A program made the translations under genes and the position numbers. Positions 46,101-49,100 of a DNA stretch of 64,000 bases are shown here, piece by piece. The notes beneath the pieces are model-generated. The model was not told the DNA's origin and did no database searches. It was given only the letters and a program-made list of their open reading frames with translations. The DNA comes from Bugula neritina (lineage: Eukaryota > Animalia > Bryozoa): the NCBI GenBank assembly GCA_964035545.1, contig OZ037767.1:31326628-31390627 (forward strand). Direction: 5' to 3'. The stretch's first letter is position 1; the number at the start of each line of letters is the position of its first letter.

Positions 46101-49100
46101 ACTATTGATGACAAATTCTGTTAAAAAAAGTTTCATTTTGAACTGAAGTTTAAGAAACACTAAGAATTTATATTGTAAACTTTCTTCGTTAATAATAATA
46201 ATAATTATTATATATATATATATATATATATATATATATATATATATATATATATATATATATATATATAGGCCATATATATATAATAGTTTTATTCATT
46301 TACAATTATTAATTGTTAAAAATAAATGTTCAAGAGTCGATAATAATGCTACGATTTATTTATTACGTTGCCTATAAGTAAATTATATAAGCTATAAAAA
46401 GTTAAATAATCTTCAGGTTTAACCAGAAAAGATGTGATGGCAAACGCCGCTATTTTTATATCTGCTGGATATGAAACCACAGCATCAACTCTTCAGTTTT
46501 TCTTCTATCTCATGGCTATTCACCCAGATATTCAAGATAAGGTATGCGTAGAATTACGACAAATGTATTTTTTTCATTTCTATACAATAAACATTAGCTA
46601 TTTAGCTGAAAGCTGCTCGTAGGCTTATCTACAACCTTGTATAGCAACAATGCTACAATACAACAAATTAATATATAGTTATAGCTACAGTTCTAGTCTT
46701 AAATGGTCATTCTTTTTATAATAACTCTCCTTAAAACTTTCTAAACTCTGGTCAAACTTTATAACGGTGGGAGAAATTTGAGTTTTATTGCAGAAGAATA
46801 AAGATGTTATTTCATCATGGTGCTGTTTTATAGCAAGTTAAATGTAGTGTATACATTTATCAGTCTTGACAACTTTCTGTTAAAGAGAAGCAAAATTACT
46901 AAATTCAAATAGGTAGTTGACGTCTTCAGTGCATCTCTTCTCATTCACCTGCTACTCATGTGACATGTCATGTGATGACAACTTCAAATTTTGACACAAT
47001 TATAGTAGTTCTTTCTTGTTGTAGCTCTACTCTTCAATATTGGAAGTAGTAGATGAGAATGGTGAATGTTCATATGAAGACTTGAAGAAGTTGGAGTACC
47101 TTGACTGGTGTATAGATGAGACTATGAGAATCTTTCCTATAGCAATCAGGTATACCTTGCTATATAATAATATAGTTATAAATAAATATACGAGAAACAT
47201 TGTTGATATATTACTTTATTAGCCAAAGTAATTATACTGATATTTCGGGCACCACTGTACCCATCTTCAGAGTATTCAGAGCATTGCTATACTCTGAAGA
47301 TGGGTACAGTGGTGCCCGAAATATCAGTATAATTACTTTGCCTAATAAATTAATAAATCAACAATGTTTCTCGTATATTTATTTAAAATTAAAATGCTAT
47401 AGCTCGTAAAGATATATTTGAAATAATATAGTTGTGTTGTAATAATAACTTAGTTAAAGAGTCGGAAGAAGTATGTCTAGCTATAGGAGATATTACTTAA
47501 TTTTTTCAGAACTTGATTTTCAGCTCTGTTTTGTCCATGTGTTCATGACTTTGTATTGTTAATATAACTTATGCAATGTTTATAAATTGGTTACTCGACA
47601 CCTGAAAACCTCTTGTATGCTTTGGATGCAGCATGTTACTGAAAGCATAATATTACTGAAAATAAATGTGTGTAACATAATCATTACACCCTTTCTGGTA
47701 CCATAGCTATACATATATATATATATATATATATATATATATATATATATATGTATATATATATATATATATATATATATATATATATATATATATATAT
47801 ATATATATATATATATATATATATACATATATATATATATATATATATATATATATATATATATAGAACTGCTCGAAATTGCAACCTTTCAGCCTTATAT
47901 TGAGCTGATAGAAAACATTCTGTTCAAAACTTTCTCAACCTCCTCAGTTAGTTACTGAAGCTAATACTGAAGACACCAATCAAAATTATATGACAAAGTA
48001 TCGATGATAAGTTTAGTATTGTTTGGGTACTAACACTTGAACACTCTATATAATTTCTTCATGCAGACTTGAAAGAGTGGCTAGTAGAGACATCACAATC
48101 AAAGGAGTGAAGATTCCTAAGGGAATGACTATAAATATGTCAATATATAACATGCACCGTGACTCTGATTATTGGACAGATCCAAACATCTTCAACCCTG
48201 ACAGGTAATAATTTCATAGAGTGTACTCTGTGGACATGATGTAATTATAATAAAATAATAAGTTGAACACATTACTGCGCATGAAGACAACCTACGATTA
48301 CCTAATTGTTAGGTTTGCACCTGAAAACCAAACAGATATCCTACAGTATGCGTTTCTTCCCTTTGGCTCTGGAGGTAGAAAGTGTATTGCTTCTAGACTG
48401 GCTCTGCTAGAAATGAAAGTTGTGATTATAAAGTCTTTGACTGAGTTTAGATATGAAGCTTGTGCAGACACTCCTAACTTGGTGAGTTCTTTGAGTGTGC
48501 TCAGTTGTTCTAGTTTTTACTGACTTAAACTTAAGCATTGAAGTGTTGCTGCAGTGGTTAACAGAGAAATATAAAATAATATCTATAGTTTATTTGTGAG
48601 AGGGTATTTTTCATGATTATGTAATTGTAAATTTTGTAATCAATATTTCTTTCAAATATTTAGTAAAAGTATTGCTTATTGTTTTATTAAAACCTGTCAA
48701 ATATACAGCCACATAACAGATTGATCAAGGGTTAGATCTCAAAACTTACAATTAGTGTCGATAGGGTGCGTGTATAAACTAAGTTTATGCTTTATGCACA
48801 TTCAGCTTACTAAACAGCCTACTAACTTCATTGTTAATGACTCCTCACTGCAGAGTCTTCTCGCTCATTATTTGGGTAGCAAAGTAGCCAATCGGATCGC
48901 TTGTAAGATAGTCCATGTCACCAGTCAATAACGTCAAGTTTGCTAACTGCTACACTATAATGATACTAAAAGCTACATTATGTTGCAACAATTGTATTTA
49001 TCATATCATCTAATTGATTTATGCAACAACCTCTTCAGTAACTCAGTGAATATATTACTGTATTATTTTAGAGAGAAATCAAGTTCCAAGACATGGCAAT

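Follow-up and report, generated by a model that had tools for sequence, protein, structure and literature searches.

The insertion in the CYP-C intron

The window, that is, the whole 64-kb stretch of Bugula neritina DNA that was analysed, contained a tandem array of four P450 paralogues. The exons of one of these, CYP-C, were translated block by block. Each of the blocks checked had one open frame, and on this ground the gene looks alive. By direct reading, the exon with the K-helix ExxR motif ended at 47149 and the following intron opened with GTATAC from 47150. An insert of 244 bp, the first base of which was 28 nt into the intron, was found between two copies of the sequence AATAATATAGTT (Table 1). 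This agreed with the original prediction, made from the letters of the window, of a 244-bp insert with 12-bp repeats at its ends, located approximately 30 nt into a CYP intron.

The predicted absence of the insert from the intron of the paralogue CYP-B was also confirmed. The CYP-B intron had the same opening sequence and contained the target only once (...ccttgctgTAATATAGTTgtgttgt..., approximately at 36040-36060). As judged by sequence, this is the empty site. Since CYP-B had only one target copy, the insert must have arrived after the CYP-B/CYP-C duplication, and the direct repeat represents genuine duplication of a 10-12-bp target. The insertion site was AT-rich and non-microsatellite, with a 155-bp (TA)n tract 280 bp downstream. 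Unlike the CYP-C copy, the majority of the copies of the family described below sat in (TA)n tracts. It is because the CYP-C copy missed this usual target that both the duplicated target and the empty site of the paralogue are legible.

An inverted-repeat search detected arms of 113 nt at 47163-47275 and 47289-47401, with 92% complementarity and a spacer of 13 nt. The element arms proper were shorter, approximately 98 nt each, and the remaining paired sequence was AT-rich flank that paired by chance. The arms were thus close to the two inverted arms of about 97 bp that had been anticipated, together with AATAAA and a 36-nt tail on one arm; the tail measured 35-36 nt and was found on the right arm only. 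The residues that it encodes in intact copies were conserved in relatives from other organisms. The ATG of the element (47364-66) was located inside the right arm, 38 nt 3′ of the predicted ribozyme cut.

Table 1. Features of the CYP-C insertion, in window positions (PLE, Penelope-like element; HHR, hammerhead)
Feature	Position	Strand	Remarks
CYP-C exon with K-helix ExxR motif	47011-47149	+	5′ splice site GT at 47150
Target-site duplication, left copy, AATAATATAGTT	47166-47177		12 bp, exact; 16 nt inside the intron
Left arm, inverted 5′-truncated pseudo-LTR fragment	47178-47275	-	No tail; outer end matches 47385 of the right arm
Mirror minimal HHR motif	47234-47275	-	Helix I 5 bp; core CUGAAGA at 47270-47264
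Head-to-head junction, hairpin loop	47276-47287		Sequence specific to the CYP-C copy
Right arm, pseudo-LTR fragment	47288-47385	+	Fragment common to the left arm
Minimal type-I HHR motif, sense to CYP-C pre-mRNA	47288-47331	+	Predicted cut 47325/47326
Helix I of the sense motif	47288-47293 and 47326-47331	+	6 bp, UAUACU paired with AGUAUA
Core CUGAAGA of the sense motif	47294-47300	+
Extra U of the sense motif	47301	+	Unpaired
GAA of the sense motif	47318-47320	+
AUAU of the sense motif	47321-47324	+
C17 of the sense motif	47325	+
Two AATAAA hexamers	47344-47349 and 47352-47357	+	Between the hammerhead and the element ATG
Remnant of the PLE ORF start	47364-47421	+	ATG and about 18 codons; stop at codon 13 breaks the frame
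Tail	47386-47421	+	35-36 nt, right arm only; codes ORF residues ~7-18 (FIIKLLARKDIF) in intact copies
Target-site duplication, right copy, AATAATATAGTT	47422-47433		Found by repeat search

Minimal hammerhead motifs

Each arm carried a minimal type-I hammerhead motif, one of them sense to the CYP-C pre-mRNA and the other its mirror on the opposite strand. The claim that each arm held an intact core of CUGAAGA, stem II and GAAA-UA-UC, closed by stem I, was borne out. All the conserved core positions (C3-U4-G5-A6-N7-G8-A9, G12-A13-A14, A15.1-U16.1 and H17) were present in both motifs, and so were an extra U, a G-C first pair in helix II and the sequence AUAU. In the sense motif, helix II had 6 bp and a 4-nt loop (GGGUAC-AGUG-GUGCCC), and the minimum-energy fold of a 50-nt stretch containing the motif consisted of exactly helices I and II (-13.7 kcal/mol).

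A scripted descriptor, requiring helix II of at least 5 bp, GAAA, a minimal helix III and helix I of at least 3 bp, was applied to both strands of the 64-kb window. It matched at 47288-47331 and 47234-47275 and nowhere else, with a chance rate of 0.005 matches per random 64 kb. A search with the Rfam hammerhead families, which had been proposed as a check of the original prediction, produced no match in the whole window at the gathering score, nor in stretches of 401 nt and 53 nt at E <= 10. The lack of a helix III, together with the additional nucleotide, probably accounts for this. Rfam models of miRNA-precursor hairpins matched the palindrome, all of them below threshold.

The parent Penelope-like family

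The insert is very probably a pair of end-fragments of a PLE family in the same genome with a unit of about 2.75 kb, in which the arm and the tail together form the pseudo-LTR. Searching the 216-Mb genome with the 244-bp unit yielded 90 match rows with approximately 79-93% identity (40 of 432 candidates scored). Some of the loci consisted of an arm plus tail alone. In two others (L032 and L033) the two inverted arms were 1.4 and 1.05 kb apart, and the intervening sequence was itself an inverted repeat. The internal ORF of these two loci ended in ...YVGETGRRLSHRIHEH..., about 240 bp 5′ of the ribozyme. This peptide had at least 150 matches in the genome, and the open frames there reached about 800 codons. 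Locus L059 had, on one strand, an arm with its tail, a 777-codon open frame and another arm with its tail, in direct orientation and with a period of 2752 bp. In L057, an inverted arm was followed by a 715-codon open frame and an arm with its tail. The pseudo-LTR carried the hammerhead in copies of the family.

The ORF of the family matched the Pfam reverse transcriptase (RT) model RVT_1 (E = 1.7e-10) and possessed QDKGKG and PGKFYG, which correspond to the N-terminal RT motifs of PLEs (DKG and GxKF/Y). A word search with the family protein recovered 606 relatives, and about 10-11 relatives were aligned (alignment A1). QDKG and PGKFYG were invariant or nearly so in this alignment. The C-terminus had the form VY...C-x5-C...YVGETGRR...H..EH, with two cysteines between VY and YVG, and residues Y730, G732, R737, R741 and H745 were invariant in A1. 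Such RT and nuclease features are those by which the canonical endonuclease-positive PLEs have been described (Craig et al. 2021, PMC8557442). The nuclease end of the family itself gave no match to the Pfam GIY-YIG model (PF01541); two of the 11 aligned relatives reached it, with a best E of 8.8e-06, above the cut-off. A phmmer search of the PDB sequences with the family ORF found nothing, and the profile of A1 retrieved from the same sequences weak RT matches only (best E = 0.00055).

A Penelope-like origin, as originally proposed, was upheld by the copies of the family, the RT-coding parent, the pseudo-LTRs, the inverted 5′-truncated copies and the one-sided tail. A genome search had been suggested for a parent element with both RT and GIY-YIG domains. 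The RT part of this expectation was realised; the nuclease block was present too, but the match to Pfam GIY-YIG was obtained in relatives only.

Conservation of the ribozyme fold in relatives

The copies in the B. neritina genome, which differed at a median of 1.5 positions in 99 nt, were too young to show selection. Metagenome contigs were scanned with the protein alignment, and 12 loci were found. The hammerhead descriptor, used here without helix I, the extra U or AUAU, matched nine of the 12 marine-metagenome loci (eight of them distinct), the relatives there having 39-46% protein identity. There was one match in each, on the sense strand and 14-64 nt 5′ of the ATG of the ORF, and no further match in these loci in about 65 kb on both strands.

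Twelve ribozyme sequences were compared, including the CYP-C copy, two more copies from the same genome and the eight distinct metagenome relatives. As the helix II registers were inconsistent in a MAFFT alignment (A2), pairs were scripted outwards from the core instead. The extra U was found in all 12 sequences, and both the G-C first pair of helix II and AUAU in 11. The core was constant across the set, save for the known substitution of U3-A8 for C3-G8 at two loci. Positions 2-6 of helix II each had three to five standard pair types. Helix I paired in all of the sequences compared, with three pair types at each of positions 1 and 2. A constant core combined with covarying helices indicates that the hammerhead fold is under selection in the lineage of the element, the cleavage itself being predicted.

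Twin copies and the origin of the insert

The 32-nt hammerhead core had at least 365 matches in the genome at two or fewer mismatches, and the reversed control had none. The stretch 28-57 nt 5′ of helix I had only 192 matches, which implies that about half of the arms end just 5′ of the ribozyme. Pairs of minus and plus hammerheads among the matches listed were spaced at 46, 52, 54, 55, 58, 220, 274 and 389 nt, with others reaching 2212 nt. The CYP-C copy, with a spacing of 55 nt, lies at the short end of this continuum. At least 21 short twins were identified. Their junctions were 7-34 nt long, differed in length and sequence and were asymmetric in either direction. It follows from these differing junctions that the short twins are independent events and not copies of one master palindrome. 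In the twins examined the tail was on one arm only, and it could be on either side.

Differences were counted in 58 sampled arms against the majority line of an arm alignment of about 155 nt, the line being used for this purpose only. Over 99 columns, the two CYP-C arms departed from the family majority at seven places in common, and only three and two differences were private. The excess of shared differences shows that both arms were copied from one RNA in a single event. Among the 58 sampled arms the CYP-C copy had diverged furthest, with 9-10 differences against a median of 1.5, and it is a dead, old and decaying stub. Cleavage in vivo could have left a footprint in the form of arms starting exactly at the hammerhead cut site; such arms were sought among the twins and none was found. 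Two candidates for such a footprint (L087 and L088) were rejected, being truncated inside helix II or further downstream and not at the cut site.

PLE insertions often include an inverted 5′-truncated copy next to the unit and a tail of 30-40 bp at one end (PMC8557442). In work with the purified protein of the PLE Poseidon, both strands of the DNA were cut and extended (Frangieh et al. 2024, PMC11167929). Reverse transcription by this protein begins at two neighbouring positions inside the RNA, and the sequence that separates them forms the tail (PMC11167929). Very probably, a PLE of the 2.75-kb family inserted once, at an AT-rich site 16-28 nt inside the CYP-C intron and after the CYP-B/CYP-C duplication. 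Both strands of a staggered nuclease cut would have primed reverse transcription on the element RNA, as PLEs typically do, with two internal start sites separated by about 36 nt. The two cDNAs would have halted just 5′ of the hammerhead and would then have been joined head to head. The expected product is two pseudo-LTR fragments of about 98 nt, each with a minimal hammerhead, a 36-nt tail on one side and a target duplication of 10-12 bp. The hammerhead itself would be a part of the life cycle of the element. Priming on two strands and the two RT start sites are what we infer by analogy with the published biochemistry, and the seven shared and five private differences of the CYP-C arms fit the two-strand, two-site priming of PLEs in vitro.

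Three observations were counted against this explanation: the CYP-C copy lies outside (TA)n, the Rfam families missed its hammerheads, and the family's own nuclease end has no Pfam GIY-YIG match. Where arms stop within about 57 nt 5′ of the hammerhead, the element RNA may have its 5′ end, or the RT may meet a hard stop. If so, the stubs would be run-off products from the 5′-proximal of two identical RT start regions.

The hairpin in the CYP-C pre-mRNA and alternative explanations

The CYP-C pre-mRNA contains one sense hammerhead motif with its complement upstream, as had been pointed out in the original prediction. The hairpin of the insert had a folding energy of -154 kcal/mol (z = -23), against -13.7 kcal/mol for the ribozyme fold. 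The proposal that the hairpin masks the ribozyme was thus supported on energy grounds. The ribozyme is predicted to be silent on two counts, as the hairpin is far more stable and the window offers no second sense hammerhead for a dimer. The AATAAA signals would be buried in the same duplex. Published minimal hammerheads are poor at self-cleavage, for which they need to be dimers or to have a longer helix III, and a lone one showed no detectable cleavage in vitro (PMC4209133).

A role for the hairpin as a copy-specific control of CYP-C had also been proposed. An intronic hairpin of about 98 bp, 28 nt from the donor site, would distinguish CYP-C from its three tandem paralogues through ADAR editing, Dicer small RNAs or slowed splicing, while keeping the sense hammerhead and both AATAAA signals silent. 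The extreme stability of the hairpin, its start close to the donor site, the absence of the insert from CYP-B and the open frames of the checked exon blocks of an apparently living gene are all consistent with such a role. However, the family has left hundreds of equivalent stubs behind as by-products. The arms of the CYP-C copy, the most diverged of the 58 sampled, are drifting apart, and 9-10 differences against a median of 1.5 have the look of neutral decay. In addition, a lone minimal hammerhead is not expected to cleave (PMC4209133), so that there would be little to mask. This control was left unsupported and we consider it very unlikely. We infer instead that the insert folds as an intronic hairpin and leaves with the intron, with no selected host function. 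It is very probably a passenger in the CYP-C intron. Nothing special follows for the P450 gene, as an intronic hairpin of this sort is a generic by-product of the family.

Two further explanations concern the origin of the palindrome. The number of short twins of similar size, and the half of the arms that end just 5′ of the ribozyme (365 against 192 matches), would suit a self-propagating, non-autonomous unit, fold-back and SINE-like or retrozyme-like, mobilised in trans by the PLE. Against this, the variable junctions of 7-34 nt leave no single master, the pair spacings run continuously up to full length, and one sense hammerhead per strand does not permit the excision of a unit-length RNA as in retrozymes. 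The probability of such a unit is therefore lower still. A MITE or fold-back DNA transposon unrelated to PLEs, with a hammerhead-like motif arising by chance, would account for the long terminal inverted repeats and the flanking direct repeats, and the sub-threshold matches to miRNA-precursor models could be cited in its favour. Yet the arms are the pseudo-LTR of an RT-encoding element, and the two ends differ, only one of them having a tail. The motif is expected by chance only 0.005 times per 64 kb, and relatives from other organisms have conserved it, with covarying pairs. This last explanation is effectively refuted. Derivation of the insert from a single PLE insertion event remains the reading that we favour. 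A PLE stub with hammerheads is a known kind of mobile DNA, and in this family the twin architecture is the rule; the CYP-C locus is a clean and well-bounded example of such a stub.

Comparison with known systems

Inverted Alu pairs in introns form dsRNA that is edited by ADAR. The insert is like such pairs in forming a long and near-perfect intramolecular duplex in a pre-mRNA intron, its own duplex being predicted from the sequence.

The Bugula family shares many features with the canonical PLEs that have a C-terminal endonuclease (Penelope/Poseidon, Neptune and related clades). These are the partial-tandem pseudo-LTRs, the frequent 5′ truncation, the adjoining inverted 5′-truncated copy, the one-sided tail of 30-40 bp, the hammerhead in the pseudo-LTR and the preference for (TA)n (PMC8557442; PMC11167929). 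The Bugula unit is short, at about 2.75 kb. The CYP-C copy differs from the canonical elements in that its arms are only about 100-135 nt long and it is located in AT-rich DNA that is not a microsatellite.

Animal non-LTR retrozymes (bioRxiv 10.64898/2026.07.22.740005) resemble the insert in being short non-coding derivatives of PLE pseudo-LTRs with type-I hammerheads. They consist of direct tandem repeats in which two sense ribozymes bound a unit, and they form circular RNAs, whereas the insert is an inverted pair. Identity with a retrozyme was considered and rejected, as the two motifs are on opposite strands and the window has no second sense hammerhead. With one sense ribozyme per strand, no unit could be excised from the insert.

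Minimal hammerheads of PLEs have an unpaired nucleotide that separates position 9 from 10.1, a G10.1-C11.1 pair, palindromic positions 15.2-16.2, a long helix II and a short helix I (Cervera & de la Pena 2014, PMC4209133). The window motifs are like those of metazoan PLEs in their type-I topology, the CUGANGA...GAAA core, G10.1-C11.1, the 6-bp helix II and the short helix I. They likewise lack a real helix III; their AUAU is palindromic, and only a dimer would allow it to pair. The CYP-C copy departs from the family majority in having helix I lengthened to 6 bp and a U-G wobble in helix II. The hammerhead of Poseidon cleaves in vitro yet is dispensable for insertion (PMC11167929). Opposed minimal hammerheads have already been reported in Schistosoma, at distances of 100-700 nt (PMC4209133). 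The pair in the window differs from these in its start-to-start distance of only about 55 nt and in lying on the complementary arms of a hairpin.

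Arm ends and other copies of the Penelope-like element (PLE) family

The hammerhead core of the PLE family had 365 matches in the Bugula neritina genome, whereas a 30-mer lying 28-57 nt upstream of helix I had only 192 when equally many mismatches were allowed. Roughly half of the family arms therefore stop just 5′ of the ribozyme. This position could correspond to the 5′ terminus of the element RNA or, alternatively, to a strong reverse transcriptase stop.

Arms were also found in clusters at two loci of this genome, L035 (G000:C5:10589000-10598999, positions 4918-5455) and L036 (G000:C2:26763000-26772999, positions 4674-5344), each with at least three arms of alternating orientation inside 600 bp. 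These clusters are repeated or nested insertions of the same family. In L059, a family copy with direct pseudo-LTRs, the 777-codon frame stops (L059:4392-4400) approximately 33 codons short of the end of the database protein P0001 (809 aa, 97% identical). Thus, the C-terminus of this otherwise complete copy is not intact.

Most family copies are sited in (TA)n, the window insert being an exception. The intron that holds the insert nevertheless has a (TA)n microsatellite of approximately 155 bp (47713-47866), 280 bp further downstream, and similar tracts occur in the window at approximately 22173-22272 and 46209-46285.

The P450 cluster

Positions of the P450 paralogues in the window
Feature	Position	Strand	Homologous intron
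Four tandem P450 paralogues	25113-58047	+	
First paralogue	roughly 25.1-28.2 kb	+	~120 nt
Second paralogue	roughly 31.8-39.5 kb	+	~1.46 kb
Third paralogue	roughly 41.2-50.1 kb	+	~0.92 kb
Fourth paralogue	roughly 53.4-58.0 kb	+	

In CYP-B, the paralogue that keeps the empty site, aatcaggtataccttgctgt is present twice (36006-36045), forming a 20-bp tandem duplication. Since the unit includes the 5′ splice site and the last five exon bases, CYP-B offers a pair of candidate donor sites separated by 20 nt. The second, if used, would shift the reading frame.

Other hammerhead variants

A second PLE family, represented at the B. neritina locus L061 (G000:C3:10892400-10893700), had a more canonical hammerhead on the minus strand, near position 1027 of the reverse-complemented locus. 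It combined CUGAUGA with 4 bp each in helix II and in a genuine helix III and with 5 bp in helix I, and (TA)n directly abutted the end of this copy. In two metagenome relatives (L076:322-371 and L080:1924-1973) the ribozyme core was UUGAUAA and not CUGANGA, a U3-A8 covariation as reported for the Cercyon elements of Schistosoma.
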